From Tubulanus polymorphus (Eukaryota; Animalia; Nemertea), in the NCBI RefSeq assembly GCF_964204645.1, contig NC_134034.1, forward strand, positions 12,164,962 through 12,228,961: a stretch of 64,000 bases of DNA, given 5' to 3'. Positions within the stretch are counted from its first letter, which is position 1. Each line of letters starts with the position of its first letter. The translations under genes and the position numbers were made by a program. Under the pieces are notes generated by a model that was given only the letters and a program-made list of their open reading frames with translations, had not been told where the DNA came from and did no database searches. Shown one piece after another: positions 8,197 to 63,833 of the stretch.

Positions 8197-9082
8197 AAAC
8201 TCTCTACCGGCCGCTCTATCACGTTTACAGATTGCAAACTCTCTACCGGCCGCTTCTATCAGGTTTACAGATTACAAACTCTCTACCGACCGCTTCTATC
8301 GGGTTTACAGATTACAAACTCTCTACCGGGGCCGCTTCTATCAGGTTTACAGATTACAAACTCTCTACCGGCCGCTTCTATCAGGTTTACAGATTACAAA
8401 CTCTCTACCGGGGCCGCTTCTATCAGGTTTACAGATTACAAACTCTCTACCGGGGCCGCTTCTATCAGGTTTACAGATTACAAACTCTCTACCGGCCGCT
8501 TCTGTCAGGTTTACAGATTACAAACTCTCTACCGGCCGCTTCTGTCAGGTTTACAGATTACAAACTCTCTACCGGGGCCGCTTCTATCAGGTTTACAGAT
8601 TACAAACTCTCTACCGGCCGCTTCTATCGGGTTTACAGATTACAAACTCTCTACCGGCCGCTTCTATCAGGTTTACAGATTACAAACTCTCTACCGGCCG
8701 CTTCTATCAGGTTTACAGATTACAAACTCTCTACCGGCCGCTTCTATCAGGTTTACAGATTACAAACTCTCTACCGGCCGCTTCTATCAGGTTTACAGAT
8801 TACAAACTCTCTACCGGCCGCTTCTATCAGGTTTACAGATTACAAACTCTCTACCGGCCGCTTCTATCAGGTTTACAGATTACAAACTCTCTACCGGCCG
8901 CTTCTATCAGGTTTACAGATTACAAACTCTCTACCGGCCGCTTCTATCAGGTTTACAGATTACAAACTCTCTACCGGCCGCTTCTATCGGGTTTACAGAT
9001 TACAAACTCTCTACCGACCGCTTCTATCGGGTTTACAGATTACAAACTCTCTACCGACCGCTTCTATCACGTTTACAGATTG
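8197..9082. repeat. 40-bp minisatellite, ~22 copies
   Basis: Unit CAAACTCTCTACCGGCCGCTTCTATCAGGTTTACAGATTA; explains the 307-aa ORF at 8232. Confidence 0.97.
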
Positions 9083-9769
9083 CACTAATTCCGGAATAGG
9101 TAGAAACAAACCCATCAGAGGACGCTCATGTGGACTATCGATCATTTTACACTGATTTCACTAAGAAAATGTGTATCATTTTAATACAATCACAATATCT
9201 ATAGTGCTCTGTACAAAGTAAAATGTCGAGCTCAAAAGCAATGACTATCATTTCTTCTTTCGACTTTTGATGAAATTATACATTTTCTATAGAAACGTTT
9301 TAAATCCACCAGCACCTCCGGCGGTTATCACATTCGATATTCTAGTTGGTGATTACATATTTTTTTAGGCTGGAAAAAAAATGTCATCGAACTTTCAGCC
9401 CGATAATTTGTCTTGCTCGTAGATGTAAAGTAAACGTCGAAGATTCGCACGATCCCGATATCAATTTTCACACCACGCGTTATTTCTTAATACGGTCAAT
9501 CGTCGCTTCAGCTGCTGCCACGCGATCGGTGAGATTATGATTTTAGCGGTAACCGGAACCACACGGGTGTGACGGTATGAAAAATCAATCGGCTCCGCGC
9601 ATCAAACCCATAAAAAACATAATCGTACCAGATCTGACTAGATCATACCGGTTCTGACCAGTAAGCCGAAACACAATAATATGTAGTTAGATAAGGATAA
9701 ATTCCCTGTAAAATATAGAATTCATTGCAATTTAGTTGTTTACCCTGATAATTAGGCGAGGCCCTGTTT

Positions 9770-26300: not shown

Positions 26301-26889
26301 GATCGTTATTCTAAGCCATCGACTAGAGGCAACCGGTCGCTACAGGCCGCACAGGTTTTTAAAAGATGTCGACAGTAAAACACTGCCTCCTAGTGGGCGT
26401 TTATCCAGTTAAACGGGACCGGAAGGACGAAACGACGAGAGAAAACTAGAAAACAACTGCTCGTCGCTGTATCGAGAACAAAATTACGAATAATGATAAT
26501 AATTGAATGCAGAAGATGAGATAGAGAGGAAAGGAGAGGGATGGAAGAGAGAGATTGGGGATTTTACGGTAAGATACCTCTCCTCATACGAAACTGTAGA
26601 TAGATCGCGAGCGAACGCGGTGGCAAATTGACCAGTAAATTAGTCTCGGCTACTAATGGAACCTAAAATACCATCAGTAAAAGTATAGCGGATGAGGGCT
26701 ATAAAAATGGGCTCTTACAGTTGTTGTCTCTGACATATACACTGACAGTAGGAAAACAAACTTAACTCGATATATATATACAGACTTTAGAAGATCGATA
26801 TGATTTTAATAGTTCGCGTCTGCGTCTAGTCTTCATAGTTGTTTGGAATTTTATCATTAGCGGACGAGACGGATTCAGATGAAAGGGCA

Positions 26890-27370
26890 AGGGGAAAGAG
26901 CGAGGGGAGAGGGGAGAGGGGAGAGGGAAGAGGGGAGAGGGGAGAGGGGAGAGGAGAGAGGACAGAGGAGAGAGGGGAGAGGAGAGAGGAGAGAGGAGAA
27001 AGGAGAGAGGAGAGGCGGGAGATGAGAGAGGAGAGAAGAGAGACGAGAGAGGAGAGAGGAGAGTGGAGAGACAAGAGAGGAGAGAGGAGAGAGGAGAGAG
27101 GAGAGAGGAGAGAGGAGAGAGGAGAGAGGAGAGAGGAGAGAGGAGAGAGGAGAGAGGAGAGTGGAGAGACAAGAGAGGAGAGAGGAGCGAGGAGAGGGGA
27201 GAGCGGAGAGAGGAGAGAGGAGAGCGGAGAGATGAGAGAGGAGAGAGGAGAGAGGAGAGCGGAGAGAGGAGAGCGGAGAGATGAGAGAGGAGAGAGGGGA
27301 GAGGAGAGAGGAGAGAGGAGAGATGAGAGAGGAGAGAGGAGAGAGGAGAGAGGAGAGTGGAGAGAGGAGA
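26890..27370. repeat. (GGAGAGA)n-type purine tract
   Basis: Direct reading. Confidence 0.95.
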
Positions 27371-29317
27371 ATTCCTAGAATCGACACTTGTTCATTTCGC
27401 TGCACTATTCGATAATGAAGTGAACGGTGAATTGGTTGCGAGTAGCTCTTAATGAGAATCCGCGGATAAAATCATTAATTACTGATGACTTCAGGTGCGC
27501 GCCAGATGCTCTCACATATCGAATAACGATTTCATAACAGTTGATTCTATTCAAAACCGAATCCAAGTTACTTAATACTCTGAACGTCTAAATTCCGCAG
27601 GGCAGTTGAGACTTTTGAATTGTAAACATTTCTCTGTATGTTCTGGGGACTTATTAGAAAAAAAACTTAAGAAATTTACTCCGAGTTTGAGCTAAGACGG
27701 AATGAAATTCCAAAGATCTTCCATTTTCTAGTAAAAATATATTTGTTCCCAAGACGGTTCTCTGGTAGCCTGTTTCGTTACAGCCATTGCAATAACTACG
27801 TAATGATCATTTATCGAAACCACGGACTCTAAAACGAATTTAGATTCCATGTCGGAACATTTAATTGGTTACGTATCAGAAATGAAAAAAAATAGTAATC
27901 ATTTACTTACCTTTTTCGTTATTCAAACTAAACCGTTGAAAAGCTTTGGTTGTGATCCCCGAGGATATATAGGCTCGTTAACCGATATAGGGGTTTGGAA
28001 GTATAGCGATAAGTGGATATTCTGTAGATCCGCTTTGTTTATACCGTTAAACTGTTGGACAAAACGGTTTTAATGTTAAGAAGTCCGCGTTTAGAAATGC
28101 CAATTTAGCCTCCGGGTGATTACAAGGCTTTTAAGTGTTCTACCGGCTCCTACTAATTGTTTATGAATCAGTAATACCAGCGAAATACAATCAGTACAAT
28201 CAGCGCGAACTACTGAATTCATTGCATTCAAACGAATCTGATTGTAGAGAGGATTGCGCTGCAATGTGTGACCTCAGGCGTCGGGGAACGCGGTCGTTTC
28301 TGAAACCGACCGACCGCGCGTCAGGTCAAGTTATCCGAACCGAATAAACTCCACTTCATCGCGCCATATTAACAAAACGTATTTTCTTAACGGAGAATTC
28401 TTCACAAGTACTTGAAATATTGCTTTCAGTAAGAGCTAGAATAATTGTTTCGAAGTTTGAATAGGACGTCCGTGCCTAGCTGTAAGAAATAACCGCCCGG
28501 AAAACGGCCAAGAGAGTCCAACAATAAGGGTGTCAATCATAGAGGTATTTAGAATGACAGATTTTCGTGTCAGAGTCAGATAGATGTAGATTAGAAAGGC
28601 AGAAGTATAAATCTACAAGGGATTAACGTTAGACAATAATCTGACGAATGAACTAATTCCTGCAATTCAGTCCTCGAGTCAATTTTAAAGCGAGATTGAT
28701 AAACATTGATGATGAAATACTCTCGAGTCCGTGTAACACGTTAAGAAAGAAAAGACGGTGCGAAATGTTTCCGCGCTTTACGACTATATCCTATAACAGT
28801 CGTTTTCGGGAAATGGGCAAAACCCACAGTAATGATAATTTAACAATTTGCTTTCTGAGAGTTTCAAAGACTAAACCTCGATATCAGAAGAAAAACGAAA
28901 AAATCATGGTATATACAGTTATCAATGACATAGATAATTGACTTTGAAATACTGAGATTGATCTCCATGAAAATCGGCAAAACTGAGTTGATGAAATAAC
29001 AGTTTATTTTGACAGTTTCGCAGTTTTGATTGAACTTCACCATCAGAAAAATCAGAATAACACGATAGTTATAATATACAGTGATTTGAAAAAGAGATTA
29101 TCATCTCTGAAATATACTGAGATTAATATCAGTCCACCAGTCAACTTCAGAAACACATTTCGGACTGTTTTCGGACTCCATTTTTGTTTTTTGTCGGTGG
29201 GGATTTTATATTATCCTCACAACACGGACTCAGAGTCTTTCATCAAAGGCTTTCGCGATCTCAGAGATTATTTTTTGTTTTGTAAGTTTTAAGCGAAACA
29301 GGATTTTAGTGGTCGCG

Positions 29318-40410: not shown

Positions 40411-40959
40411 CTATAAAAATTCATATGAAAATTGTTTAATAGTTTAATGCTGCAGTTGATGGATGCAGTATAGATTTTATCATTTTACGCACTAAAATGA
40501 GTAAATTTACTTAAGAAATTAATTCAATCTGATCATCGCTATATTAAACACAGCTCATCCCTCTCTCCTCCCCCTCTCGCTCTCTTTCTCTATCTCTTAC
40601 TCGGTAGTTATTCAATTTAAACCGGTGAGATGCAAAATTTAATTTCATTAGAGCCGTATTACGGTGACACGAGCATTGAGGCGCGAAATACCGCCGCCGG
40701 GGACGCGTGGAGAAATCCAGCTTATACCGCCGCACTCTCTCTCTCTCTTTCCCTCTCTCTCTCTGTCTCTATCTTACTCTGCTCTCTTTCTCCGAGAAAC
40801 AATTATTTATTGAGTTTTTGTCTGCTTCCAGATGAAATGACCGGTAGGAAACGACTGTTCGCTAGAATAACCCGCATCGTATAGTCTACTGGAATGCGTG
40901 ACTGATTCATCCACGTTACGGATAGATAACTCGCTCTACCAACCGCCGCCACCGCTTAC

Positions 40960-41434
40960 TGAGGGAGAGGCAGAGGGAGAGGCAGAGGCAGAGGAAGAGG
41001 CAGAGGGAGAGGCAGAGGCAGAGGCAGAGGCAGAGGCAGAGGCAGAGGCAGAGGCAGAGGCAGAGGCAGAGGCAGAGGGAGAGGGAGAGGGAGAGGGAGA
41101 GGGAGAGGGAGAGGGAGAGGGAGAGGGAGAGGGAGAGGGAGAGGCAGTGGGAAATGTAGAGGGAGAGGGAGAGGCAGAGGGAGAGGCAGAGGCAGAGGCA
41201 GAGGCAGAGGCAGAGGCAGAGGCAGAGGCAGAGGCAGAGGGGAGACGAAGAGGGAGAGGCAGAGGCAAGAGGGGAGACGAAGAGGGAGAGGCAGAGGCAA
41301 GGGCAGAGGCAGAGGCAGAGGCAGAGGCAGAGGCAGAGGCAGAGGCAGAGGCAGAGGCAGAGGCAGAGGCAGAGGCAGAGGCAGAGGCAGAGGCAGAGGC
41401 AGAGGCAGAGGCAGAGGCAGAGGCAGAGGCAGAG
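40960..41434. repeat. (GAGGCA/GAGGGA)n hexanucleotide repeat
   Basis: Direct reading; explains the EA/EG ORF. Confidence 0.95.
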
Positions 41435-41867
41435 ATCATGTAATACTACATTAGAGAGAAATGAAGGTCGATACGAGTTATTTTTTTCTTCATTCTCTGG
41501 TAAAATGCGGAAAAGCAATAGCTCAACAGTATAAGAGTAATCTATCATGACTGACGCAGCTATGTACCTCCCTAGAGTCAATGTAACAAACGCTAATTAC
41601 AGACCTTTAGTTTTGTTCTATATGTGAGCTATGAAGCGATGGGGAGAACAGAGGGAGAGGGGGAGGGAGAGGGGGAGTTCTGTGCAGCTCACCGATCCAA
41701 CCCAATTAAAGTGTAGAGTCTATAAAAATGTGACATTTTGTTTGCAACACTTTTCGTAACATTCTTTTCGGTTCAATATTAGCAGCGCTTGTATTTTTCA
41801 ACGCCTTAAAATATACCTTATATTAACAAAAGATGAAGCTGATGGTTGTCGTAAACAATAAACAAGT

Positions 41868-47160: not shown

Positions 47161-47404
47161 CCACTGTCAAAACAATCTAGTGAACGCGCTTCACGACATT
47201 TAAACTAAAAAGCGAATAGTATCAGGTGAAGTACGATCGAGCCGGCGGCGTTCAGTGGAAACGATCAATTTTCAAAGTAGATTTTATCTTTTGTTTCAAG
47301 AGACGGTTTTGCGACGAACCAAATGGCCCGTAATTACTAAGATTAATGAGGTCATTATCGGCAAGTGAAACCGTTCACGAAATGGCCGGTGATATTACTG
47401 AGAG

Positions 47405-48138
<734 letters not shown>

Positions 48139-48629
48139 AGCAACTACACCATTTTACTGTCATACATCATTTTTGAATTGAAAGAGTTTTTTGGGGGATA
48201 TATTCAAGTTAGCGGAGGAACCATATCCAAATTAGACTCGATTCATAAAAGAAATATCAGAAGACACAATTTATGGTTTTTAGGGCCACACAGTCAGTTC
48301 ATTGGTCTTGCTATAAACCAGTATGAGCTTAGACTGGTCCTGAGTTATTAGATTGGTTATAGAACCAAAATGAGCTTAGAGACATGCGTTAAGTTGTTAA
48401 AATATATACAACCGAATGAGCTTAGACTGGTCTTAAACTGATAGATTGGCTAAAGAACGATATCTAGCTTAGACTGGTTCTAATTTAAACATCGACAGTG
48501 AAACAGGCCTGGAACATAAGTACAAATCATGACACAATCTTAGCCACTACTGCCCCAGTTCTACTGTGCCCGTGTTGACATTTCGTTTGATAACTTAACC
48601 TTGGATCTATTTGTAACTGTGGGTCAAAT

Positions 48630-48771
48630 TGATAAAACTGTAAAGCCTATGCCACGAAATTACGCCTCAGTTGTTTTTCAACCTATATCTGACGAAACTA
48701 CATTAGGATAGTTATCAGTTATATTCGACTCATAAGACATTCAGTGACTGCTCGGTTGAACTGGTGTTTGT
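48630..48771 (+). promoter_or_regulatory. Putative cassette promoter/5'UTR block (homologous block precedes each exon A)
   Basis: GATAA…GTAAA…CTATG.CAC…CAGTTGTT…GATAGTTATCAG…ACTCATAAGACATT.GTGACT shared with blocks at ~50830, 52790, 54857, 56815 and more loosely 59490, 62050. Confidence 0.45.
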
Positions 48772-48898
48772 ATGATGGGTATGCACAGGCAGTTGTACGC
48801 GATGTGGCTGATGTTCTTGACGGCCAGTTTTATAACAATTATCTGGATCGCTGTCAATATTCACTTGTACGGTTGGAACTGCGATAATATATGCGCAG
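48772..48898 (+). CDS. GH3/GHDC-like cassette 1, exon A (start codon + hydrophobic N-terminal segment)
   Basis: ATG 48772, MMGMHRQLYAMWLMFLTASFITIIWIAVNIHLYGWNCDNICA-G; ends CAG|GTAAG (phase 1); homologous exon recurs 7 times and joins exon B in frame. Confidence 0.85.
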
Positions 48899-48919
48899 GT
48901 AAGAGATTCACCTCCAGCA

Positions 48920-49400
48920 CATGGGAGCCCTTCACCCGACTGACAGGGTTCGTGAGGAGCCCTTCACCCGACTGACAGGGTTCGTGAGGAGCCCTTCACC
49001 CGACTGACAGGATTCATGGGAGCCCTGCACCTGACTGACAGGATTCATGAGAGCCCTGCACCTGACTGACAGGGTTCGTGAGGAGCCCTTCACCCGACTG
49101 ACAGGGTTCGTGAGGAGCCCTTCACCTGACTGACAGGATTCATGGGAGCCCTGCACCTGACTGACAGGATTCATGGGAGCCCTGCACCTGACTGGTAGGG
49201 TTCATGGGAGCCCGTCAGCCGACAAGCAAGGCTCAATGGGAACCCTTAACCCGACTGGCACGGCTCATGGGGAGCCCTTCATCCGACGGGTAGGGTTCAT
49301 GGGGAGCCCTTCGCCCAACTGGAAGGGTTCATGGGATGCCCTTCACCTGACTGACAGGGTTCATGGATAGCCTTTCATCCGACTAGCAGAGTTCATGGCG
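48920..49400. repeat. 31-32-bp minisatellite inside cassette 1 intron
   Basis: GAGCCCTTCACCCGACTGACAGGGTTCGTGAG units, degenerating toward the 3' end; absent from paralogous introns. Confidence 0.9.
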
Positions 49401-49455
49401 AAACCCTCCTTGACACCAATAAATTCATTAGTATGATGTTGTTGATGTTTTGCAG

Positions 49456-50663
49456 GTTGTGTCTCTTTAGTGTTAGTCGTTATAACCGGTATCATCAGTG
49501 ATATTCGCAGCCGAGATCCCAGTGATTCTCACTCCTGGTCCAGTCTCTATCACCAATACTACGAAGTTGTAAGAACACTAACCACCGGCAGATGGCGCTA
49601 CGCTCAGTTTATACGTCACTCGCTGGACGTCGCCAAGCAGCAAGAAGCCTTCCTAGTCAATCTACTGAAGGAAGCAAGTCACACAGAATACGGCAGGAAA
49701 TTCGGATTCGCCGAAATTAACGACGTAAAGAGATTCCGACAGCAGGTGCCACTGTCTAAATACGACAGTTACCGTGAACTGGTGAATAGGATGCTAGAAA
49801 CAGACGCCGGGGACCTGGTCAGTCCGGGTAAAGCCATCAAATACGGTATGACGTCGGGAACCACTGGTCCGAATAAACACATACCTTACAATTATAAAGC
49901 TTGGAATACGCTCGTAAACGACTACCTGTATTTAATCAGATACACTGAATACAAGCACGGTATGACTGCACGAGCAGGACTTCGTAAAATCCTCGAGCTT
50001 CTAATCCTGCATAAACCGAATCTAAACCGTTTTGGTAAACCAGTCGCCGGTATACTGGTGCTAGTGGGCGAGCAGGCTTATTCGGTAAAACCGGACTGTA
50101 TGCGAGGACGGAAACTGAGTGAATCGTTACAGATGTACATTCAGGCGCGGATTGCTTTACAAGAACCAAAACTACAATTCATACAAGGCTCATTCCCGAC
50201 TATTATGCGCAGTTTCGTTTCCACGATCGAATCTCGCTGGCAGGAAATCTGTGACGACATCGAACGCGGTACATTGACCGACAAACTCGACCTTGACATC
50301 GACCTGCGCCGTCAGATCGTCTGCCAGCTGAAGCCGGATAAAGCTCGCGCTGATGAACTGAGAATGTTGTTCGGCGAAGGTTTCGATAAGTTGCTCAGTC
50401 GCGTGTGGCCGGAGTTGCAGATGGTTGCACAGGTGACGACTGGAGCGTTCACTCATGAGTCAGCTGTCATCAGAGCCAAATATCTGAACGATTCTGTAAT
50501 GATGAAGTCTATAATGTATGGAGCTACTGAAGGCTTATATGGTATCACTATGCCTGGTGTTCCTGATGGTCATTATGTTCCGATGTTACCGCTACAGTTT
50601 CTAGAATTTATACCTCGTAACGAATGTGAACTCGACAAACCGACCACAAGACTAGCTCATCAG
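49456..50663 (+). CDS. GHDC: GH3/GHDC-like cassette 1, exon B (N-terminal adenylation/acyl-binding domain)
   Basis: Acceptor TTTTGCAG|GT; open frame with GH3 hallmarks TEYGRKF, FRQQVPLSKYD, P-loop TSGTTGPNKHIP, ICDDIERGTL, WPEL, YGATEG, FLEFIP; ends RLAHQ CAG|GTTTAT (phase 0); 1208 nt. Confidence 0.9.
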
Positions 50664-50969
50664 GTTTATGAATATTCTTTTCTCATTTCTTTCATCATCT
50701 TAACCTTACTTATCATCGATTATGTTCATCTATTTCATTCCTCATTTACCAGGCATTTCATGTGGTTTTTTCCCATTACAAAAAAATGTAATATGTTTTA
50801 TAACGTACTCGGGCCAGATTTCAAAGGTGACACGATAAGATATAGTAAAATCTATGTCAACAAAGATACCTTAGTATTTAAAGAAATATCTATATAAACT
50901 GCCATTCGATGACAGATACCAGAATCACGAGACGGCATTCTGCGAGTTGCGGTTTCAAGGTATTGTAAG

Positions 50970-51093
50970 ATGGGTATGCATAGACGGTTACATGCGTTAT
51001 GGCTGGTGATTTCGACGACCAGTTTTGTCACGATGACCTGGATCGTTGTCAATATTCACTTGTACGGTTTGAACTGCGATACTATATGTGCAG
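50970..51093 (+). CDS. GH3/GHDC-like cassette 2, exon A
   Basis: ATG 50970, MGMHRRLHALWLVISTTSFVTMTWIVVNIHLYGLNCDTICA-G; CAG|GTAAG phase 1. Confidence 0.82.
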
Positions 51094-51416
51094 GTAAGGA
51101 GCAACTGTTTCCAAATAATATCGATTGAAAATTCTGGACCAAAACACATGAAGACTTATAGTGCCTAATAGGTTAACGTGATTGTATCGATAACTTTCGC
51201 TACTACATCGTAGTATATAGTGGCATAGTGTCGTCATCAGGTAGATGAGACCTGTTGAAGCTTACATGCACTTAACTGATTAGCCCGTGTTCTTAAAACA
51301 ATCAAGGTTACCTACCGTTCAACCAGTCTTCGCAATTATTGATTTTAAACGGCTACAAATTCAAGGCAACTTCAACCAATCCTGATATGACCTTCGATGC
51401 TGTTGATGTTTTGCAG

Positions 51417-52624
51417 GTTGTGTGTGCTCAGTGTTAGTCGTTATAACCGGTATTATCAGTGATATTCGCAGCCGAGATCCCAGTGATTCTCACTCCTGGT
51501 CCAGTCTCTATCACCAATACTACGACGTCGTGAAAACACTGACCACTGGTAGGCGGCGCTACGCTCAATTCATACGTCACTCGTTGGACGTCGCCAAGCA
51601 ACAAGAAGCCGTTCTTGTTGATCTGATGAGGGAAGCAAGTCACACAGAATACGGCAGAAAATTCAGATTCGCCGAGATTAACGACGTAAAGAGATTCCGA
51701 CAGCAGGTGCCACTGTCTAAATACGACAGTTACCGTGAACTGGTGAATAGGATGATAGAAACAGACGCCGGGGACCTGGTCAGTCCGGGTAAAGCTATCA
51801 AATACGGTATGACGTCGGGAACCACTGGTCCAAACAAACACATACCATTCAACTATAAAGCTTTGAATATGATTGTAAGTGACTTGATCTATTTACGCAG
51901 ATACACCGAGTACAAACATAGTTTGACCGCGAGAGCGGGGCTTCGTAAAATCCTTGAGCTTCGTATCCCGCATAGGCCGAATCTAAACCGTTTCGGCAAA
52001 CCTGTCGCCGGGATAATGGCGCTAGTTGGCGAACAGGCTTATTCGGTAAAACTAGACTGTATGGGAGGGTGTAAACTGAGTGAATCGGTACAGATGTACA
52101 TTCAGGCGCGGATCGCTTTACAAGAATCAAAACTACAATTCATACAAGGCTCATTCCCGACTATTATGCGCAGTTTCCTTACTACGATCGAATCTCGCTG
52201 GCAGGAAATCTGTGACGACATCGAACGCGGTACGTTGACCGATAAACTCGACCTTGACATTGACCTGCGCCGGCAGATCGTCTGCCAACTGAAGCCGGAT
52301 AAAGCTCGTGCGGATGAACTGAGAATGATATTCGGTGAAGGTTTTGATAAGTTGCTCAGTCGAATGTGGCCGGAGTTGCAGATGGTTGCACAGGTGACGA
52401 CTGGAGCGTTCACTCACGAATCGGCTGTCATCAGAGCCAAATATCTGCACGATTCTGTAATGATGAAGTCTACAATGCACGGAGCTACTGAAGGTGTATA
52501 TGGTATCACTATGCCTGGTGTTCCTGATGGTCATTATGTTCCGATGTTACATCTACAGTTTCTAGAATTCATACCTCGTAACGAATGTGAACTCAGCAAA
52601 CCGACCACCAGACTAGCACATCAG
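51417..52624 (+). CDS. GHDC: GH3/GHDC-like cassette 2, exon B
   Basis: TTTTGCAG acceptor; 1208 nt open frame; TSGTTGPNK, HGATEG; donor CAG|GTTTAT. Confidence 0.9.
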
Positions 52625-52947
52625 GTTTATAAATCTTTTTCCTTCATTTTACCAGTACTTATCGTAAATTTCGTTTCAATTCTTTGTTTTCTTATTTCTC
52701 ATTTTTTACGCCTCCGGGCTACTTGTTTGTTTTTCATAGCGAATGATTGCATGTTTTAACAAAGTGCTCGGGCCTGATTTTTAAGTATGACACGATAAGA
52801 TATAGTAAACTCAATGTCACAAAATGACGACAGTTGTTATACGCATATAAACTATGTGTATGACGTAATCGCCTGAGGATAGTTATCAGATCAGGATCAC
52901 GAGACTCATAAGACATTTTGTGACTTCTCGGTTTAACTGGTGTTTGT

Positions 52948-53074
52948 ATGATGGGTATGCACAGGCAGTTGTACGCGTTATGGCTGATGTTTTTAACGGC
53001 CAGTTTTATCACAATTATCTGGATCGCTGTCAATATTCACCTGTACGGTTTGAACTGCGATACTATATGCGCAG
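52948..53074 (+). CDS. GH3/GHDC-like cassette 3, exon A
   Basis: ATG 52948, MMGMHRQLYALWLMFLTASFITIIWIAVNIHLYGLNCDTICA-G; CAG|GTAAG. Confidence 0.85.
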
Positions 53075-53205
53075 GTAAGGAGCGACTGCTTTCAAATAAG
53101 TGAATCATAAATTCTAGACTGATGCACGTGAAGACTTATAGTACTTACTAGGTTATCTTGATTTTATTAGTAACTTAAGCTTCTAGTACACAGTGTTACC
53201 ATCAG

Positions 53206-53343
53206 GGGCCGGTTGCATAGTCATGGCTTAGACTTAAGACCAGTCTAAGACCAACTCAGTTCTATAGCCCATCTAACAACTTAAGACCAGTCTTAAGATT
53301 TAGGACCACTTTTGGGCTTAAGTCACGACTGTGCAACTGGCCC
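53206..53343. mobile_element. PIF/Harbinger-like MITE (138 bp) in cassette 3 intron
   Basis: TIRs GGGCCGGTTGCATAGTCATGGCTTA / TAAGTCACGACTGTGCAACTGGCCC; CAG TSD at 53203-05 and 53344-46; paralogous introns of cassettes 2 and 6 show the empty site with a single CAG. Confidence 0.85.
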
Positions 53344-53502
53344 CAGGTTAATGAAACCTGATGAAGCACTAGTAGCTACTTTTTCTTATAAACTCAAGGT
53401 AACCTACGAGCAATTAGTTTTCAAGTGTATTGATTTTACACGGCAATTGATTTTAGAGAACCTCAACCAACCCCGATATTTATGACCATTGATGTTTTGC
53501 AG

Positions 53503-54710
53503 GTTGCGCATGTTCAGTGTTCGTCGTTATAACCGGTATTATCAATGATATTCGCAGTCGAGATCCCAGTGATTCTCACTCCTGGTCCAGTCTCTACCGT
53601 CAATACTACGACGTCGTCAAAACTCTGACCACCGGTAGATGGCGCTACGTTCAATTCATACGTCACTCGTTGGACGTCGCCAAGCAACAAGAAGCCGTTC
53701 TTGTTGATCTGATGAAGGAAGCAAGTCACACAGAATACGGCAGGAAATTCAGATTCGCCGAAATTGATGACGTAAAGAAATTCCGACAGCAGGTGCCACT
53801 GTCTAAATACGACAGTTACCGTGAACTGGTGGATAGAATGATAGAAACAGACGCCGGGGACCTGGTCAGTCCGGGTAAAGCTATCAAATACGGTATGACG
53901 TCGGGAACCACTGGTCCAAATAAACACATACCTTACAATTATAAAGCGTGGAATTCTCTCGTGAACGATATGATCTATTTTGCTAGATACACCGAGTACA
54001 AGCACGGTTTGACTGCAAGAGCGGGGCTTCGTAAAACCCTCGGGTTTCTAATGCCACATAAACCGAATCTAAACCGTTTTGGTAAACCAGTCGCTGGTAT
54101 AATGGCGCTAGTTGGTGAGGAGGGTTATTCGGTAAAACCTGACTGTATGCGGGGGCATCATCTGAGTGAATCGGTACAGATGTACATTCAGGCGCGGATT
54201 GCTTTACAAGAAACAAAACTACAATTCATACAAGGCTCATTCCCGACCATAATGCGCAGTTTCGTTTCCACGATCGAATCTCGCTGGCAGGAAATCTGTG
54301 ACGACATCGAACGCGGTACATTGACCGATAACCTCGACCTTGACCTTGACCTGCGCCGGCAGATCGTCTGCCAACTGAAGCCGGATAAAGCTCGCGCTGA
54401 TGAACTGAGAATGTTGTTCGGTGAAGGTTTTGATAAGTTGCTCAGTCGCGTGTGGCCGGACTTGCAGATGGTTGCACAGGTGACAACTGGGGCATTCGCA
54501 CACGAATCGGCTGTCATCAGAGCCAAATATCTGAATGATTCTGTAATGATGAAGGCTGTGGGGTATGGAGGTACTGAAGGTGTATATGGTATCACTATGC
54601 CGGGTGTTCCTGATGGTCATTATGTTCCGATGTTACATCGACAGTTTCTAGAATTTATACCTCGTAACGAATGTGAACTCGACACACCGACCACCAGACT
54701 AGCCCATCAG
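53503..54710 (+). CDS. GHDC: GH3/GHDC-like cassette 3, exon B
   Basis: TTTTGCAG acceptor; 1208 nt open; TSGTTGPNK, YGGTEG; donor CAG|GTTAAA. Confidence 0.9.
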
Positions 54711-55004
54711 GTTAAATATTTTCACCTTTTATCGGTACTTTTTATCAATTTCTTTTAATACTTTTTCATTCCCCAATTACCGATGTTTTACGTGTTCTTT
54801 TTCATAAAAATCGTTGCATGTTTTTGTGTAACGTATAACGACCTGATTTAAAGTGCGATACGATAACATACAGTAAAATCTGTGTCACAAATTGGCGACA
54901 GTTGTTAAAGATATATCTATATGAACTGCTAATCGAGGACAGATAACGGGATCACGAGACGAATAAGACATTTTGTGACTGCGCGGTTTTAAGGTGTCTC
55001 TACG

Positions 55005-55128
55005 ATGGGTATGCATAGGCAATTAAACGCGTTATGGCTGATGTTTTTGACGGCCAGTTTTATCGCAATGATCTGGATCGCTGTCAATATTCACCTGTAC
55101 GGTTTGAACTGCGACACTATATGCGCAG
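55005..55128 (+). CDS. GH3/GHDC-like cassette 4, exon A
   Basis: ATG 55005, MGMHRQLNALWLMFLTASFIAMIWIAVNIHLYGLNCDTICA-G; CAG|GTAAG. Confidence 0.85.
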
Positions 55129-55418
55129 GTAAGGAGCGACTGCTTCCAATTATTATCGATTGCAGATTCTAGCCCGCGACGACTATAGTGCTAAGCACGT
55201 TAGGTTGATATAAATAGTAACTAATAGCCTAATAGTGTATAGTAGATTGTTCGGGTAAACAACCTGATTAAGCTACTTTTGACAAGTAGCGAAAGCTTGT
55301 ATTTCTCGTGATACCAGTCTTCGTGTTTTTTTTTTTAATATTTTGCACTGCTAAAAATTCTAGACGACCTCGTACAACCCCGATATTCATGACCTTTGAT
55401 GCTGTTGATGTTTTGCAG

Positions 55419-56626
55419 GTTGCGCATGTTCAGTATTAGTCGTTATAACCGGTATTATCAGTGATATTCGCAGCCGAGATCCCAGTGATTCTCACTCCTG
55501 GTCCAGTCTCTATCACCAATACTACGACGTCGTCAAAACCCTGACCACTGGTAGGTGGCGCTACGCTAAATTCATACGTCACTCGCTAGATGTCGCCAAG
55601 CAACAAGAAGCCTTTCTAGTCGATCTGATGAGGGAAGCAAGTCACACGGAATACGGCAAGACATTTCGATTCACCGAAATTGACGATCTAAAAAGATTCC
55701 GACAGCAGGTGCCACTGTCTAAATACGACAGTTACCGTGAACTGGTGGATAGGATGATAGAAACAGACGCCGGGGACCTGGTCAGTCCGGGTAAAGCCGT
55801 CAAATACGGTATGACGTCGGGAACCACTGGACTGAATAAACACATACCGTACAATAATAAAGCGTGGACAATGATTTATAACTATTTTCATTATTTCTGC
55901 AGATACGTCGAATACAATCACGGTGTAACTTCAAGGGTGGGATTGGGCAAATTATTGGAGCTTCGCATCTCACATAAACTAAAAGTTAACCGTTTCGGCA
56001 AACCGATCGCTGGGGTATTAGTTTTACTTGGTGAGCAGGCTTATTCGGTAAAACCGGACTGTATGCGAGGGCACGAATTGAGTGAATCGGTACAGATGTA
56101 CATTCAGGCGCGGATTGCTTTACAAGAATCAAAACTACAATCCATACAAGGCTCATTCCCGACTATAATGCGCAGTTTCGTTTCCACGATCGAATCTCGC
56201 TGGCAGGAAATCTGTGACGACATCGAACGCGGTACATTGACCGACAAACTCGACCTTGACCTTGACCTGCGCCGTCAGATCGTCTGCCAGCTGAAGCCGG
56301 ATAAAGCTCGCGCTGATGAACTGAGAATGTTGTTCGGTGAAGGTTTTGATAAGTTGCTCAGTCGCGTGTGGCCGGAGTTGCAGATGGTTGCACAGGTGAC
56401 GACTGGAGCGTTCACTCACGAGTCAGCTGTCATCAGAGCCAAATATCTGAACGATTCTGTAATGATGAAGTTTAACTTGTATGGAGGTACTGAGGGTTTA
56501 TATGGTATCACTATGCCTGGTGTTCCTGATGGTCATTATGTTCCGATGTTACCGCTACAGTTTCTAGAATTTATACCTCGTAACGAATGTGAACTCGACA
56601 CACCGACCACCAGATTAGCACATCAG
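55419..56626 (+). CDS. GHDC: GH3/GHDC-like cassette 4, exon B
   Basis: TTTTGCAG acceptor; 1208 nt, in frame with ORF 55628; TSGTTGLNK, YGGTEG; donor CAG|GTTGTT. Confidence 0.9.
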
Positions 56627-56958
56627 GTTGTTAAATTATTTTTCATTATCCTCCAATACTTTTTATCAATAACGTTTCATTTTTTCATTCCTCATTTTCC
56701 AGGCTTCTAGTACTTGTTGTTTTTTTTTTTCAAATAAAAAACCGTGAACTCGGGCCGATGTTCTGACTACGATCTGTTCGGGTCGTTATGCGACCTGAGC
56801 TTGGCTAAAATGTGAGACGATAAGATAGAGTAAAATCTATGTCACGCAATGACGGCAGTTGTTAAACATATCTGTGACGAAATCGCCTGATAATAGTTAT
56901 CAGGATCACGAGACCCATGGAACGGCCTGTGAATGTGTGGTTTCAAGGTTTTTTTTCT

Positions 56959-57085
56959 ATGATGGGTATGCATAGGCAGTTATACACGTTATGCCTGATG
57001 TTTTTGACGGCCAGTTTTGTCACGATGATCTGGATCGCTGTCAATATTCACCTGTACGGTTTGAACTGCGATACTTTATGCGCAG
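56959..57085 (+). CDS. GH3/GHDC-like cassette 5, exon A
   Basis: ATG 56959 (an in-frame upstream ATG also exists at 56917), MMGMHRQLYTLCLMFLTASFVTMIWIAVNIHLYGLNCDTLCA-G; CAG|GTAAG; following intron only 79 nt. Confidence 0.85.
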
Positions 57086-57164
57086 GTAAGGAGCGACTGC
57101 TTCAAATTAATATCGATTGTAAATGCTAGAGTACGCAGAGACTAAGAATGTTAATGTTTTGCAG

Positions 57165-58372
57165 GTTGTGTGTGTTTAGTGTTAGTCGTCATAACCGGTA
57201 TTATCAGTGATATTCGCAGCCGAGATCCCAGTGATTCTCACTCCTGGTCCAGTCTCTATCACCAATACTACGACGTCGTGAAAACACTGACCACTGGTAG
57301 GTGGCGCTACGCTCAATTCACACGTCACTCGTTGGACGTCGCCAAGCAACAAGAAGCCGTTCTTGTTGATCTGATGAGGGAAGCAAGTCACACAGAATAC
57401 GGCAGGAAATTCAGATTCGCCGAAATTAATGACGTAAAGAAATTCCGACAGCAGGTGCCACTGTCTAAATACGACAGTTACCGTGAACTGGTGGATAGGA
57501 TGATAGAAACAGACGCCGGGGACCTGGTCAGTCCGGGTAAAGCCATCAAATACGGTATGACGTCGGGAACCACTGGTCCAAATAAACATATACCATTCAA
57601 CTATAAAGCGTGGAATTCACTCATGAACGATTACCTGTATTTAGTCAGATACACTGAATACAAACACGGTATGACTGCAAGAGCAGGACTTTGTAAAATC
57701 CTCGAGCTTCTAATCCTGCATAAACCAAATTCAAACCGTTTTGGTAAACCAGTCGCTGGTATAATGGTGCTAGTGGGCGAGCAGTCTTATTCGGTAAAAC
57801 CGGACTGTATGCGAGGACGGAAACTGAGTGAATCGGTACAGATGTACATTCAGGCGCGGATTGCTCTACAAGAACCAAAACTACAATTCATACAAGGTCT
57901 TTTTCCGACTATTATGCGTAGTTTCCTTACTACGATCGAATCTCGCTGGCAGGAAATCTGTGACGACATCGAACGCGGTACATTGCCCGATAACCTCGAC
58001 CTTGACCTCAACCTGCGCCAGCAGATCGTCTACCAGCTGAAGCCGGATAAAGCTCGCGCTGATGAACTGAGAATGTTGTTCGGTGAAGGTTTTAATAAGT
58101 TGCTCAGTCGCGTGTGGCCGGAGTTGCAGATGGTTTTACAAGTGACGACTGGAGCGTTCACTTCTGAATCGGCTGTCATCAGAGCCAAATATCTGCACGA
58201 TTCTGTAATGATGAAGGCTATCGAGTATTGGGGTACTGAGGGTTTATATGGTATCACAATGCCTGGTGTTCCTGATGGTCATTATGTTCCGATGTTACAT
58301 CTACAATTTCTAGAATTTATACCTCGTAACGAATGTGAACTCGACAAACCGACCACCAGACTAGCTCATCAG
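57165..58372 (+). CDS. GHDC: GH3/GHDC-like cassette 5, exon B
   Basis: TTTTGCAG acceptor; 1208 nt open; TSGTTGPNK, YWGTEG; donor CAG|GTTTTT. Confidence 0.9.
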
Positions 58373-59160
58373 GTTTTTAAAATCTTTTTACATCATTCTA
58401 TTGGTATATTTCGTCAATTTAGTTTTTTTTTATTTTCATTCCTCATTTCCCAAGTGTTTAGGTGTTTTTTTCTCAGATAACGATTAAAATCAATATAGCT
58501 GCAAGGCAGCGATAACATGTTTTCTACACCTCTTACATTTGAACTCAGGGGAATGACCATAGAATATACAAGGTTTATAAGGTAAATTCATTGCCGGGAA
58601 TTCGAAGCTGATATTATGATAAGAGAAAATAATGGAGAATGTGACTGAAATGGATGTTTGATTCGGATATTCCCGGAGTATTCCATTTATTTTGGCAAAT
58701 GAATAATGCTCACAGCACAAACAAACGAAGAGTATGTGATATCCTACAGCAATTATATACCTACCTACAAGAATCCTTGAAATTGAAATATTTGATAATT
58801 TCAAGTTTTACCTCATTTGTTGATGGTGTTCTGTTCCGTAAATAACGAGTTTAAAATCGGATGCATACCACATACATGGAATCCACTAGTTCAGAGTGTC
58901 TGTTATATTTTAGTCAGAATTTATTATCGCGTCAAGATGCTGCTACTAGTCGAATTTGATAGGACATAAATTTTTAGAACGCTCGCGAAAGGGGAATGGA
59001 AAATAATATCACGAAAATAACAATAGTTTCCTGCGAAGTTATCAGTGATGATAATTTAATTTTCTTTTCTGCGCTCCACTGCGTTTCAGAGCAGTTTACA
59101 TACTTAAGTAAAAAAGTGCTCGATGCTTTATAACGCAGTCCTGTCAGACAACTGGATATA

Positions 59161-59480
59161 CAGTCGACCTCGCAATAATCGTCAATTTAGGGACCGGCTC
59201 AAAAGTAACGATTCATCTAATTGACGGATTAAGTGCATTGTGACTTTCTGACTCATATCACCAGTCTCTGTTTTTCAATATCTACTATGAATGAATGAGA
59301 ACATGCGATGAGGTCGTCGTGATTCATGTATGTATCGATTTTCTGTGTGTATTTGCTACAAAGCTATAGGGTCTGTGTCAAGGCAATATGGCCTAATAAA
59401 CGCGGCACCTGCTGATTAATATTCATTTGTGCAGCGACGGTTTAACTGATATCATTACGTATGAGCAGTACTTATAAACG
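59161..59480. mobile_element. Insertion with Tc1/mariner-pogo-like left terminus in spacer 5-6
   Basis: TA followed by CAGTCGACCTCGCAATAATCG…GGGACC; segment is absent from the otherwise homologous spacer 6-7; right TIR not clearly intact and right boundary approximate. Confidence 0.4.
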
Positions 59481-59613
59481 GACTTGATGTAGCAGTGTCT
59501 ATGCAATAAAATGACAGCTCAGTCGCTATAGATATCTAGCGAAACCGGCCGAACTAGTTTTCTGGCTAAATGAGAATATTTCATTCTGTGACAGCGCGGT
59601 GTAAGGCGTTTTT

Positions 59614-59743
59614 ATGACGTTGGGTATGCACAGGCAGTTATACGCGTTATGGCTGATGTTTTTGACGGCCAGTTTTGTCACAATGATCTGGATCGCTGTC
59701 AATATTCACCTGTACGGTTTGAACTGCGATATTGTATGCGCAG
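59614..59743 (+). CDS. GH3/GHDC-like cassette 6, exon A
   Basis: ATG 59614, MTLGMHRQLYALWLMFLTASFVTMIWIAVNIHLYGLNCDIVCA-G; CAG|GTAAG. Confidence 0.83.
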
Positions 59744-60040
59744 GTAAGAAGCGACTGCTTTCAAATATTAATTATATCGATTGTAAATTCTAGACCAAAA
59801 CACGTGAAGACTTATAGTAATTAGTAGGTTAACTCGATTTTATAAGTAATTTTAGCTTCAAGTGCACAGTGGCTCAATCAGGTTTAATGAAACCCGGCGA
59901 AACATAACTCGTCACTAGTAACGAAAGCTTGCATTTCTCGTGTTACCAGTCTTCGCGGTTATTGATTTAACACCTCTTCAAATTCTAGACGACCTCGATC
60001 AACGCCGATATTTATGACCTTTGATGTTTTTGTTTCGCAG

Positions 60041-61245
60041 GTTGCGCATGTTCAGTATTAGTCGTTATAACTGGTATTATCAGTGATATTCGCAGCCGAG
60101 ATCCCAGTGATTCTCACTCCTGGTCCAGTCTCTATCACCAATACTACGACGTAGTGAAAACAATGACCACCGGAAGATGGCGCTACGCTGAGTTCATACG
60201 TCACTCGCTAGACGTCGCCAAGCAACAAGAAGCCTTTCTAGTCAATCTGATGAGGGAAGCAAGTCACACAGAATACGGCAGAAAATTCAGATTCGCCGAG
60301 ATAAACAACATAAAGAAATTCCGACAGCAGGTGCCACTGTCTAAATACGACAGTTACCGCGAACTGGTAGATAGGATGCTAGAAACAGACGCCGGGGACC
60401 TGGTCAGTCCGGGTAAAGCCGTCAAATACGGTATGACGTCGGGAACTACTGGCAAGAGTAAACACATACCGTACTGTTGTACAGCTTGGAATTCACTCAT
60501 GAACGATTTCTTCCCTTTCCTGAGATACACTGAATACAAACACGGTATGACTGCGAGAGCGGGGCTTCGTAAAATCCTCGAGATTCTTATTCTACAAAAA
60601 CCGAATCTAAACCGTTTTGGTAAACCAGTTGCCGGTATAATGGCGCTAGTAGGCGAGCAGTCTTATTCGTTAAAACCGGACTGTATGCGAGTGCACAAAC
60701 TGAGTGAATCGGTACAGATGTACATTCAGGCGCGGATTGCTTTACAAGAACCAAAACTACAATTCATACAAGGCTCATTCCCGACTATTATGCGCAGTTT
60801 CCTTTCCACGATCGAATCTCGCTGGCAGGAAATCTGTGACGACATCGAACGCGGTACATTGACCGATAAACTCGACCTTGACCTTGACCTGCGCCGTCAG
60901 ATCGTCTGCCAACTGAAGCCGGATAAAGCTCGTGCTGATGAACTGAGAATGTTGTTCGGGGAAGGTTTTGATAAGTTGCTCAGTCGAATGTGGCCGGAGT
61001 TGCAGATGGTTGCACAGGTGACGACTGGAGCGTTCACTCACGAGTCAGCTGTCATCAGAGCCAAATATCTGCACGATTCTGTTATGATGCAGTCTGAGTA
61101 CGGAGCTACTGAGGGCAAATATGGTATCACTATGCCTGGTGTTCCTGATGGTCATCATATTCCGATGTTATCGCTACAGTTTCTAGAATTCATACCTCGT
61201 AATGAATGTGAACTCGACAAACCGACCACCAGACTAGCTCATCAG
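60041..61245 (+). CDS. GHDC: GH3/GHDC-like cassette 6, exon B
   Basis: TTTCGCAG acceptor; 1205 nt (one-codon in-frame deletion before YGATEG); TSGTTGKSK; donor CAG|GTTTAT. Confidence 0.9.
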
Positions 61246-62195
61246 GTTTATGAATATATTTTAACCATTTTACAAGTACTTCTTATCAATTTCGTTTTAT
61301 ATAATTTTTCCATTCCTCATTTTCTAAGCTTTTACCGGTTTGTTGTTTTTTTTTCATAGATAATGATTATGATTAATGCACCTGCTAAGCAACGATAAGC
61401 AGTTTTCCGCACCTTTTGCATATGAAGTTAAGGGATTAAAAAATTGCAAAAGATATTTATTGCCGGGGAATAAAACCTGATATTATAACTGTAGAAAATC
61501 GGTAATGTTACTGAAATGGATATCTGATTTGGGTATTCTCGGTTCCGTCCACTTACTTTGGCACGTGACTAATGTCACAAACGATCAATATCGTGCAGTA
61601 ATTATATCCGAATCCACAACAGTACTTGAAACTGAATTTTCAAGTAATTGTACGTTTTACCGTATTTCTGGGTGGTGTTTTGTTTCGTAAAATAAACATT
61701 TTAAAATAGGATGGACGGTACACATATTGAAACTACTGGTCCAGAAAGTGTGTTTTATTTTTGTCAAAATTTATTATTACGTTTAGAAGCTGTAACTAGT
61801 CGTGTTGACGAGGCACACGTTTTATAGAACGCTTGCTGCTTGACAAGGGAAATGAAAATGACAATCACGAAAATAAACATATTATAGAATTTTCTGCGAA
61901 GTGATAATTACTGATGATGATTTCATTTCATTTTCTCTGCGCTCGACTACGTTTCGTGGCGGTTTACATGTTCAAACGTCAATAAGTCAAAATCAAAAAT
62001 AGCTTTATTTGTTTGATAACGTAGTCGGGTCAGAAACGACTCAGTATTGTTAAATCTATACCATAAAATGAGAGGTCACAGTCTTTAAAGATATCTAACG
62101 AAACCGCCCGAACTGGTTTTTAAGCCAAGCGTAGGTATTTCATTTTGTGCATCGCAGTTTTTAAGGATTTTTAACGAGGGTTTACTGGTGTTTTT

Positions 62196-62322
62196 ATGAT
62201 GGGTATGCGTAGGCAGTTGTACGCGTTATGGATGATGTCTTTAGCCGCCAATTTTTTAACAATTACCCTGACCGTTGTCAACATTCACCTGTACGGTTTG
62301 AACTGCAATACTTCATGCGCAG
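62196..62322 (+). CDS. GH3/GHDC-like cassette 7, exon A
   Basis: ATG 62196, MMGMRRQLYALWMMSLAANFLTITLTVVNIHLYGLNCNTSCA-G; CAG|GTAAG. Confidence 0.83.
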
Positions 62323-62625
62323 GTAAGAAGCGACTGCTTTCAAATAATATCGATTGTACATTCTAGAGTAGTACGCAAGAATAGTTTTTTAGTGGTTAAC
62401 TTGATTTCATTGAAACTATCGCTAGTACATTGTAGTAGATAGTGGCTTCATCGGGTAGATGAGACCTGTTGCAGCTACAATGCACTTAAAGTAACTTGTG
62501 TTCTAAAAACAATCAAGGTTACCTGCCGTTCTAACCAGTATTCGCGTTTATTGATTTAAGACGACTACAAATTCTAGACGAACACAATCAACCCTCATAT
62601 GACGTTTGATGTCGTTGTTTTGCAG

Positions 62626-63833
62626 GTTGTGTGTCTTTAGTGTTAATCGTTATAACCGGTATTATCAGTGATATTCGCAGACGAGATCCCAGTGATTCTC
62701 ACTCCTGGTCCAGTCTCTATCGTCAATACCGATGCGTAGTAATAACGCTTATCACCGGAAGATGGCGCTACGCTCAATTCACACGTCACTCGCTGGACGT
62801 CGCCAAGCAACAAGAAGCCGTTCTTGTTGATCTGATGAGGGAAGCAAGTCACACAGAATACGGCAGGAAATTCAGATTCGCCAAAATTGACGACGTAAAG
62901 AAATTCCGACAGCAGGTGCCACTGTCTAAATACGACAGTTACCGTGAACTGGTGGATAGGATGATAGAAACAGACGCCGGGGACCTGGTCAGTCCGGGTA
63001 AAGCCGTCAAATACGGTATGACGTCGGGAACTACAGGCAGGAGTAAACACATACCGTACAATAATAAAGCGTGGAAAATGCTGTTTAGTTATTATCATTA
63101 TTTCTTCAGGTACATTGAGTGCAAACACGATGTCACATCAAGAGTGGGTTTGGGAAAAATATTGGAGCTACGTATGTTACATCGACCGATTCTAAACCGC
63201 TTCGGTAGGGCAGTAGCTGGGGCATTAGTTTTACTAGGTGAACAGGCTTATTCGGTAAAACCGGACTGTATGCGAGGGCAAAAACTGAGTGAATCGGTAC
63301 AGATGTACATTCAGGCGCGGATTGCTTTACAAGAACCAAAACTACAATTCATACAAGGCTCATTCCCGACTATAATGCGCAGTTTCGTTTCCACGATCGA
63401 ATCTCGCTGGCAGGAAATCTGTGACGACATCGAACGCGGTACATTGACCGATAACCTCGACCTTGACATCGACCTGCGCCGTCAGATCGTCTGCCAACTG
63501 AAACCGGATAAAGCTCGCGCGGATGAACTGAGAATGTTGTTCGGTGAAGGTTTCGATAAGTTGCTCAGTCGTGTGTGGCCGGAGTTGCAGATGGTTGCAC
63601 AGGTGACGACTGGAGCGTTCACTCACGAGTCAGCTGTCATCAGAGCCAAATATCTGCACGATTCTGTAATGATGAAGTCTATAATGCACGGAGCTACTGA
63701 AGGTTTATATGGTATCACTATGCCTGGTGTTCCTGATGGTCATTATGTTCCGATGTTACATCTACAGTTTCTAGAATTTATACCTCGTAATGAATGTGAA
63801 CTCGACAAACCGACCACCAGACTAGCTCATCAG
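62626..63833 (+). CDS. GHDC: GH3/GHDC-like cassette 7, exon B
   Basis: TTTTGCAG acceptor; 1208 nt open; TSGTTGRSK, HGATEG; donor CAG|GTTTCA. Confidence 0.9.

Follow-up and report, generated by a model that had tools for sequence, protein, structure and literature searches.

A 64,000-nucleotide (nt) stretch of chromosome-scale contig C10 of the nemertean Tubulanus polymorphus (C10:12164962-12228961, forward strand; 268-Mb assembly, 77 contigs), here called the window, runs into a GH3-type enzyme locus with a variable-constant layout. Ten tandem 5' cassettes in one orientation, each an exon A plus an exon B, are followed by a single set of four constant exons, E1-E4. The cassette array spans ~23.4 kb and the whole locus ~25 kb. 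We read the ten cassettes feeding E1-E4, which RefSeq distributes over LOC141911654 and four fragment 'genes', as one variable-constant gene complex, with a probability of roughly 75%. A preliminary description had counted seven intact, in-frame A+B units in the window and placed their shared 3' exons downstream of position 64000. We added 30 kb downstream (94 kb in total; genome coordinate = 12164961 + extended coordinate), in which tblastn and blastn found exactly ten exon A + exon B pairs and no further or degenerate cassettes or relics on either side of the array. The intactness stands, every frame being open, but the count does not, as the array runs past the window edge.

The constant exons lie where they had been forecast, in one copy directly after cassette 10 and 8.6 kb past the window edge. 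E1 begins in phase 0, with a sequence close to the predicted start (V-x-x-G-x-x-Y-E-L-V...GLYRYRxGD), and contains YRYRTGD. Together E1-E4 (C10:12237576-12239346; 597 nt, 198 amino acids (aa)) encode motif III, the hinge and the C-terminal domain with the FKQPR lysine; the intron before E1 measures 449 nt. A whole-genome Pfam scan returned ten GH3 N-domain matches on C10, with one GH3_M (C10:12237567-12237704, 43.5 bits) and one GH3_C (C10:12239116-12239304, 31.2 bits), both directly behind cassette 10. No second copy, fragment or relic of E1-E4 was found in the 94 kb, spacers included (tblastn E up to 10; blastn word size 7). The earlier statement that the spacers hold no YRxGD-type coding sequence is thus borne out, and separate C-terminal exons for each cassette are absent, the sole set occurring once. 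The variable-constant boundary precedes motif III by ~20 residues, so that motif III, the hinge and the entire C-terminal domain are all missing from a cassette on its own.

Each exon A (124-130 nt) encodes a hydrophobic N-terminal anchor of the form M(M)GMHRQLYALWLMFLTASF..IWIAVNIHLYGLNCD..CA and provides an ATG of its own, which in every cassette follows an in-frame stop by 12-84 nt. The exon-A donor (CAG/GTAAG, phase 1; a slash marks the splice boundary) fits the phase-1 acceptor of exon B (TTTGCAG/GT) across an intron of 79-557 nt. Exon B (1205-1208 nt, 401-402 open codons, no stops, phase-0 donor) comprises most of the GH3 N-terminal domain: P-loop, acyl-acid pocket and motif 2. The splice sites and frames of both exons are intact in 10/10 cassettes. 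The seven exon-B donors previously placed at 50663, 52624, 54710, 56626, 58372, 61245 and 63833 are base-exact, each reading ...TTRLAHQ with CATCAG/GTT, and all six spacers to the next ATG (306, 323, 294, 332, 1241 and 950 nt) were reproduced from the located ATG positions. All ten exon-B donors have T at +3 (GTTTAT, GTTAAA, GTTGTT, GTTTTT, GTTTCA, GTTCAC); the homologous donors of GH3 paralogs have a purine there, and every exon-A donor of the array is GTAAG.

Homology falls at the exon-B donor, as the preliminary description had it, but not to nothing: a T-rich element, TTCATTCCTCATTTCCC...TTTTTTTCTCAG/ATAATGATTAA, is conserved ~50-110 nt behind the donors of cassettes 1-9 (window 50720-50780 for cassette 1). 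It resembles a pyrimidine tract and acceptor with stops after them and may act as a proximal terminal mini-exon or regulate splicing; cassette 10 has no such element behind it. Each long spacer also holds an 18-nt unit, AGCAGTTTACATACTTAA (window 59090-59107, extended 64544 and 70004), with a good acceptor (tttcag/) and GTAAAA after it; its first copy is the terminal coding exon of cassette 5 in RefSeq LOC141912164 (tail SSLHT).

Splicing was followed in four sequencing runs compared over C10:12233700-12239650 (5951 letters, within which joint positions are counted), covering the end of cassette 9, all of cassette 10 and E1-E4. One run (run X2) is RNA-like and alone shows the GT..AG joints E1-E2 (4004->4153), E2-E3 (4304->4822) and E3-E4 (4910->5420). 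The same run contains a further GT..AG joint, 549->3877, which leads from the exon-B donor at 69287 over the whole of cassette 10 to the E1 acceptor at 72615. None of these joints occurs in the DNA-like run X1. The last 43 nt of exon B are identical in cassettes 5, 7 and 9; cassettes 2-4 differ at -7 and cassette 10 at -6, and therefore the joint contig does not come from cassette 10. This contig proves that a non-terminal cassette of the 5-9 type is joined to E1, and splicing is thus not confined to the last cassette. Depth in the RNA-like run is zero in the 600 nt behind the donor at 69287 (cassette 9).

The RefSeq models of LOC141911654 describe the same joints for other cassettes. Isoforms X1 (643 aa), X2 and X3 (642 aa each), X4 (560 aa) and X5 (531 aa) all run ...RLA(H or Y)Q/LVEDEEYEVV into the same 198-aa tail. 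By exact containment, a whole exon B is found in X1 (cassette 3), X2 (cassette 4) and X3 (cassette 2), and a partial one in X5 (cassette 4) and X4 (cassette 10). Alternative isoforms in the NCBI pipeline normally need transcript alignments. RefSeq proteins of the locus start in exon A. The proposal that all seven window donors reach a common acceptor is accordingly upheld for one 5-9-type donor (by the RNA contig) and for cassettes 2, 3 and 4 (by RefSeq models); cassettes 1, 5, 6 and, beyond the window edge, 8 are stand-alone truncated genes in RefSeq. The layout is already implicit in these isoform models, though not described, and the four separate RefSeq 'genes' are probably mis-split cassettes of LOC141911654, an annotation problem that we flag here. 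The preliminary description had named four findings that would speak against a shared tail: no constant exons downstream, splicing of the last cassette only, transcripts ending within each spacer, and C-terminal exons for every cassette. For the locus as a whole, none of the four was found.

What the splicing assembles is, judged by domains and motifs, a complete GH3 enzyme. Each exon B matches the Pfam GH3 N-terminal domain PF03321 (E about 1e-51; 8e-51 to 8e-52 for cassettes 1 and 7); the M and C domains reach the same polypeptide only via splicing to E1-E4, and the RefSeq isoforms carry all three (PF03321 + PF23571 + PF23572). For full-length comparisons we used existing database proteins (P0051, which is isoform X1; P0004; and P0049, which is isoform X3), not self-joined exon models. 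Residues 101-637 of isoform X1 align with Arabidopsis AtGH3.12/PBS3 (E 6e-33) with all motifs in place: P-loop TSGTTG.PNKHIP (versus SSGTSGGAQKMMP), motif 2 YGGTEG (versus YGSSET), motif III YRYRTGD (versus YRMRVGD) and the C-terminal lysine motif FKQPR (versus YKTPR). TSGTTGxxKH and TEG are invariant in 10/10 cassettes. By homology, the enzyme would probably use ATP to conjugate various carboxylic acids to an amine or amino acid; we know of no substrate for animal GH3/GHDC proteins. Orthology to vertebrate GHDC was considered and rejected (PF25146 17.1 bits against a cut-off of 34.1; 25-29% identity to fish GHDC proteins).

GH3 paralogs elsewhere in the genome share the phase-0 intron after ..HQ. 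The paralog on contig C5 reads ..VLAHQ/GTGCGT.., followed by an 85-nt intron and LVEDEEYELV, and those on C3 have it after ..KRIHQ (GTACGG, GTACCT, GTATAA); being common to both, the intron position is ancestral. The C3 group (C3:8621426-8629729) consists of three tandem full-length copies, and M and C exons accompany every one of them. Copy 2 is interrupted by an in-frame stop, and in copy 3 the frame shifts just ahead of the homologous ..KRIHQ/GTAC donor. Whole-gene duplicates on C3 are thus decaying, whereas the half-gene cassettes on C10 are intact.

The cassettes are under purifying selection. The median pairwise ratio of nonsynonymous to synonymous divergence (dN/dS) is 0.27 at a median synonymous divergence (dS) of 0.27, and listed pairs fall between 0.20 and 0.36, including non-terminal pairs such as 6-7. 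Private substitutions number 49 synonymous to 65 nonsynonymous, against an expected 77.7% nonsynonymous (p = 7e-7); cassettes 1-5 alone give 42 to 47 (p = 2e-7). The older cassettes share 85-93% identity in their exons, where no indel breaks the frame, against 56-71% in introns and upstream DNA, where indels are many. The last five cassettes (extended 58373-72165) repeat a ~5.45-kb two-cassette unit as (6,7), (8,9) and 10, at 95-98% identity in exons and introns alike, which indicates that the array has very recently expanded in tandem at its 3' end.

Variation among the ten cassettes is concentrated in a hypervariable core that starts just after the P-loop (exon-B codons 136-212). These 77 codons, 19% of exon-B length, hold 23 of the 36 sites with at least three residue types (p = 5e-9). 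For pocket positions we used the AtGH3.12 residues reported to contact salicylate, Tyr120, Arg123, Ile217 and Gly326 (PMC6769663); PMC12305054 gave no fuller AtGH3.12 list. The Tyr120 equivalent is Tyr, except for Pro in cassettes 6, 8 and 10; the Arg123 equivalent is an invariant Arg, and the position directly before it takes seven different residues. The Gly326 equivalent directly adjoins a second variable patch, codons 351-353 and 360. Between cassette types the core is 64-85% identical, while codons 213-330 are 90-99% identical in all pairs whatever the core type; cassettes 1 and 9, for example, share 99% identity in this flank and 70% in the core. Such a mosaic points to gene conversion around the core, whose differences are preserved. 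The core types (1/5, 2, 3, 4, 6/8/10 and 7/9) would correspond to about six or seven acyl-pocket variants. Positive selection in the core was tried as an explanation and rejected: dN/dS is 0.30-0.42 there and dS is also raised (~0.5), which marks the core as older divergence left unconverted rather than as adaptive change that can be demonstrated.

Each cassette may well start a transcript of its own, given its ATG with a nearby upstream stop, an alignable TATA-like block upstream of exon A and the lack of a coding exon in the 48 kb upstream. Transcription would begin at one cassette's own promoter, exon A would join exon B across the short intron, and the phase-0 exon-B donor would skip all downstream cassettes to reach E1. 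Since exon B itself carries an acceptor, an upstream exon-B donor on a long pre-mRNA has exon-B acceptors available downstream of it; splicing of one exon B to another would break the frame (phase 0 into phase 1). In the mechanism we propose, each downstream exon-B acceptor would be taken by its own adjacent, strong exon-A donor (GTAAG), which would outcompete the distant and uniformly weak upstream exon-B donor (GTT), and E1 would remain the sole free acceptor. The outcome would be up to ten isoforms of 642-644 aa, with some six or seven acyl pockets on one catalytic tail. A more ambitious picture, which we hold with more doubt than confidence, is that of the first variable-constant GH3/ANL locus, a compact 25-kb spiralian counterpart of UGT1A whose promoter choice and nested GTT/GTAAG splicing would supply a phase-II-like amino-acid conjugation battery with ~seven pockets.

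Several observations weigh against a single gene complex of ten cassettes. The RNA joint is one contig (depth 309) with only 23 letters on its shorter side; we infer that a short anchor is the expected output of a k=31 assembly graph where several cassettes converge on one exon. Assignment of this contig to one cassette is ruled out by the identity of cassettes 5, 7 and 9 over the last 43 nt. No spliced joint from cassette 10 to E1 is listed in the RNA-like run; instead a contig of depth 69 (C10:12237091-12237603) runs unspliced from cassette 10 exon B through the 449-nt intron into E1, which may be intron retention at the weak GTTCAC donor. The RefSeq isoforms are weighed here as models whose underlying transcript evidence is not visible; cassettes 1, 5, 6 and 8 are separate truncated proteins (447-482 aa) in RefSeq, and for cassettes 7 and 9 no RefSeq protein was found. 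Private changes in the youngest cassettes, 6-10, number 7 synonymous to 18 nonsynonymous, too few to judge, and some of the purifying-selection signal could stem from gene conversion by a functional copy. The upstream block is 63-71% identical between older cassettes, no better conserved than synonymous sites. A search with the last 100 aa of exon B in a large protein collection yielded no transcript-derived fragments across the junction, a result uninformative on expression.

The leading alternative is a mixed locus, in which only cassettes 2, 3, 4, one of 5-9, and 10 would feed E1-E4, the others being stand-alone truncated or non-productive units or incipient pseudogenes. Such an arrangement would account for the separate RefSeq models, which end by read-through (6, 8) or in tiny terminal exons (1, 5), for the pyrimidine tract and AG ~100 nt behind the donors of cassettes 1-9 as a possible proximal terminal exon, and for the near-neutral private changes in the young copies 6-10. 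Yet cassettes 1 and 5 show signatures of purifying selection like those of 2-4, exon-A and exon-B splice sites and frames are kept throughout, and the spacer behind the cassette 9 donor has no coverage in the RNA-like run. Catalysis by ANL/GH3 enzymes needs motif III and the C-terminal domain, neither of which a GH3 N-domain alone would have. The read-through models, moreover, resemble the intron retention behind variable cassettes in sDscam (PMC4835542). We consider a mixed locus unlikely, though a serious alternative.

Much less probable is an ordinary gene, cassette 10 plus E1-E4, behind nine inert partial duplications, with the isoform models and the contig as annotation or assembly artefacts. 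Units 6-7, 8-9 and 10 are indeed recent duplicates, whose 95-98% identity proves nothing on function, and the directly seen RNA support is one contig. Inert copies, however, would hardly retain ten open exon-B frames at a median dS of 0.27, with dN/dS of 0.2-0.36 in every listed pair, private changes biased toward synonymous and exons far better conserved than introns among older cassettes; two of the three full-length C3 tandem paralogs already carry a stop or frameshift. The RNA joint also has exact GT..AG ends at the predicted donor and acceptor. Least probable of all is Dscam1-style mutually exclusive choice, driven from a single promoter ahead of the array and guided by docking-site/selector RNA pairing. 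The tandem, highly similar units in one orientation and the conserved intronic element behind the donors of cassettes 1-9 would suit it, but every exon A has its own ATG and an in-frame stop just upstream, with no evident acceptor-like site there, RefSeq proteins begin in exon A, and the 48 kb upstream hold no exon bearing an open reading frame and no shared coding leader. Pairing energies (RNAduplex) between the 449-nt intron and the 150 nt that follow each of the nine upstream donors were no better than those of shuffles (z -1.05 to +1.54). The variable-constant gene complex remains our preferred reading.

Table 1 Positions of cassettes, constant exons and associated features; window coordinates unless marked extended
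Feature	Coordinates	Strand	Remarks
Upstream block, cassette 1 example	48600..48771	+	~170 nt upstream of exon A; alignable across ten cassettes; TATA-like TAAAGATATCT; putative promoter
Cassette 1 exon A	48772..48898	+	ATG, hydrophobic anchor, donor CAG/GTAAGA phase 1; N-terminus of RefSeq XP_074658709
Cassette 1 exon B	49456..50663	+	402 codons; donor CAG/GTTTAT phase 0; contained whole in XP_074658709
Hypervariable core, cassette 1 (exon-B codons 136-212)	49861..50091	+	Aligns with AtGH3.12 Tyr120, Arg123
Cassette 2 exon A	50970..51093	+	N-terminus of RefSeq isoform X3
Cassette 2 exon B	51417..52624	+	Joined to constant exons in RefSeq isoform X3
Cassette 3 exon A	52948..53074	+	
Cassette 3 exon B	53503..54710	+	Joined to constant exons in RefSeq isoform X1 (643 aa)
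Cassette 4 exon A	55005..55128	+	
Cassette 4 exon B	55419..56626	+	Joined to constant exons in RefSeq isoforms X2, X5
Cassette 5 exon A	56959..57085	+	
Cassette 5 exon B	57165..58372	+	RefSeq: separate truncated gene LOC141912164
Cassette 6 exon A	59614..59743	+	
Cassette 6 exon B	60041..61245	+	401 codons; RefSeq: read-through gene LOC141912120
Cassette 7 exon A	62196..62322	+	
Cassette 7 exon B	62626..63833	+	Last 43 nt as in cassettes 5 and 9
Cassette 8 exon B	extended 65493-66697		
Cassette 9 exon B	extended 68080-69287		
Cassette 10 exon B	extended 70958-72165		Ends TTRLAYQ/GTTCAC
E1	extended 72615-72742		Starts LVEDEEYEVVSTGMNGVYRYRTGD...; carries YRYRTGD (motif III)
E2	extended 72891-73042		
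E3	extended 73560-73648		
E4	extended 74158-74385		Stop codon included
RefSeq model of cassette 1			LOC141911620; 447 aa; ends in tiny terminal exon
RefSeq model of cassette 5			LOC141912164; 450 aa; ends in tiny terminal exon
RefSeq model of cassette 6			LOC141912120; 482 aa; ends by donor read-through
RefSeq model of cassette 8			LOC141912165; 469 aa; ends by donor read-through

One minisatellite, whose unit reads ..LQTLYRPLLSGLQITNSLPAASIRFTDYKLSTGRFYQVYR.. in open frames, occurs at window 8232-9155 (~40 kb upstream of cassette 1) and again at C10:12239352-12240605 (extended 74391-75644), directly after the E4 stop, and therefore brackets the locus. Very long GA/CT-type microsatellites (window 47346-48351, 26762-27405 and 40898-41581) produce spurious frames of 130-330 aa on both strands; no convincing coding open reading frame was found in the 48 kb upstream of the array.

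To our knowledge, few variable-constant loci exist, and nearly all of the well-studied ones either belong to vertebrates (UGT1A, protocadherins) or encode adhesion receptors (sDscam). Our literature search found no such layout for GH3/GHDC, the papers on GHDC with a GH3 domain being, by title and abstract, omics or clinical gene lists; among the T. polymorphus papers listed, none concerns this locus. The architecture itself is not new, as sDscam-alpha has two-exon 5' cassettes (PMC4835542); the enzyme family is new for it. Plant GH3 enzymes (AtGH3.12/PBS3, JAR1, GH3.5) and vertebrate GHDC resemble the nemertean product in the full-length AtGH3.12 alignment and in the kept P-loop, motif 2, motif III and C-terminal lysine motif, but are encoded by ordinary single-transcript genes and diversify via whole-gene paralogs.

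In anatomy, the chelicerate sDscam genes are closest. Their cassettes comprise two or four exons, leader exon first, with two in sDscam-alpha (PMC4835542), and in both sDscam-alpha and -beta multi-exon 5' cassettes with their own ATG and an upstream in-frame stop are spliced to common exons (PMC4835542). The intron retention reported behind the last variable exon (PMC4835542) resembles the read-through models and the unspliced contig seen here. The sDscam products, however, are Ig-superfamily adhesion receptors, not enzymes, and promoter activity and isoform use were shown experimentally there, not at the nemertean locus. Clustered protocadherins (alpha, gamma) likewise combine variable 5' with constant 3' exons and have a mosaic of a homogenised part and a diverse specificity part, but use a single large variable exon without an acceptor and extend over hundreds of kilobases; their promoter choice is stochastic and CTCF/enhancer-dependent, and the comparison with the nemertean locus is one of layout and sequence only. 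The sDscam authors noted that the question of cassette skipping could not be tested in 200-kb protocadherin clusters (PMC4835542). The present locus, at ~25 kb, is of a size at which minigenes could be used to test how a cap-proximal donor bypasses the cassettes downstream of it.

In function, the nearest analogue is the human detoxification gene UGT1A, which with GCNT2 belongs to the kind of gene with multiple variable 5' exons and constant exons (PMC1885805). There, too, tandem variable 5' units supply a leader peptide and the substrate-binding N-terminal domain of a conjugating enzyme (PMC1885805, PMC3325998), one shared 3' exon set supplies the co-substrate/catalytic C-terminal part, and variation is concentrated in the substrate-binding region. 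The two differ in protein family and lineage (a GH3/ANL adenylate-forming ligase in a nemertean, a GT-B glycosyltransferase in vertebrates); the nemertean locus has a two-exon variable unit with an internal acceptor and is far more compact. Its naturally diversified pocket offers a direct handle for substrate screening. As an enzyme example from a nemertean, it indicates that the layout arose again, apparently for a UGT1A-like purpose: many substrate-binding heads on one catalytic tail.

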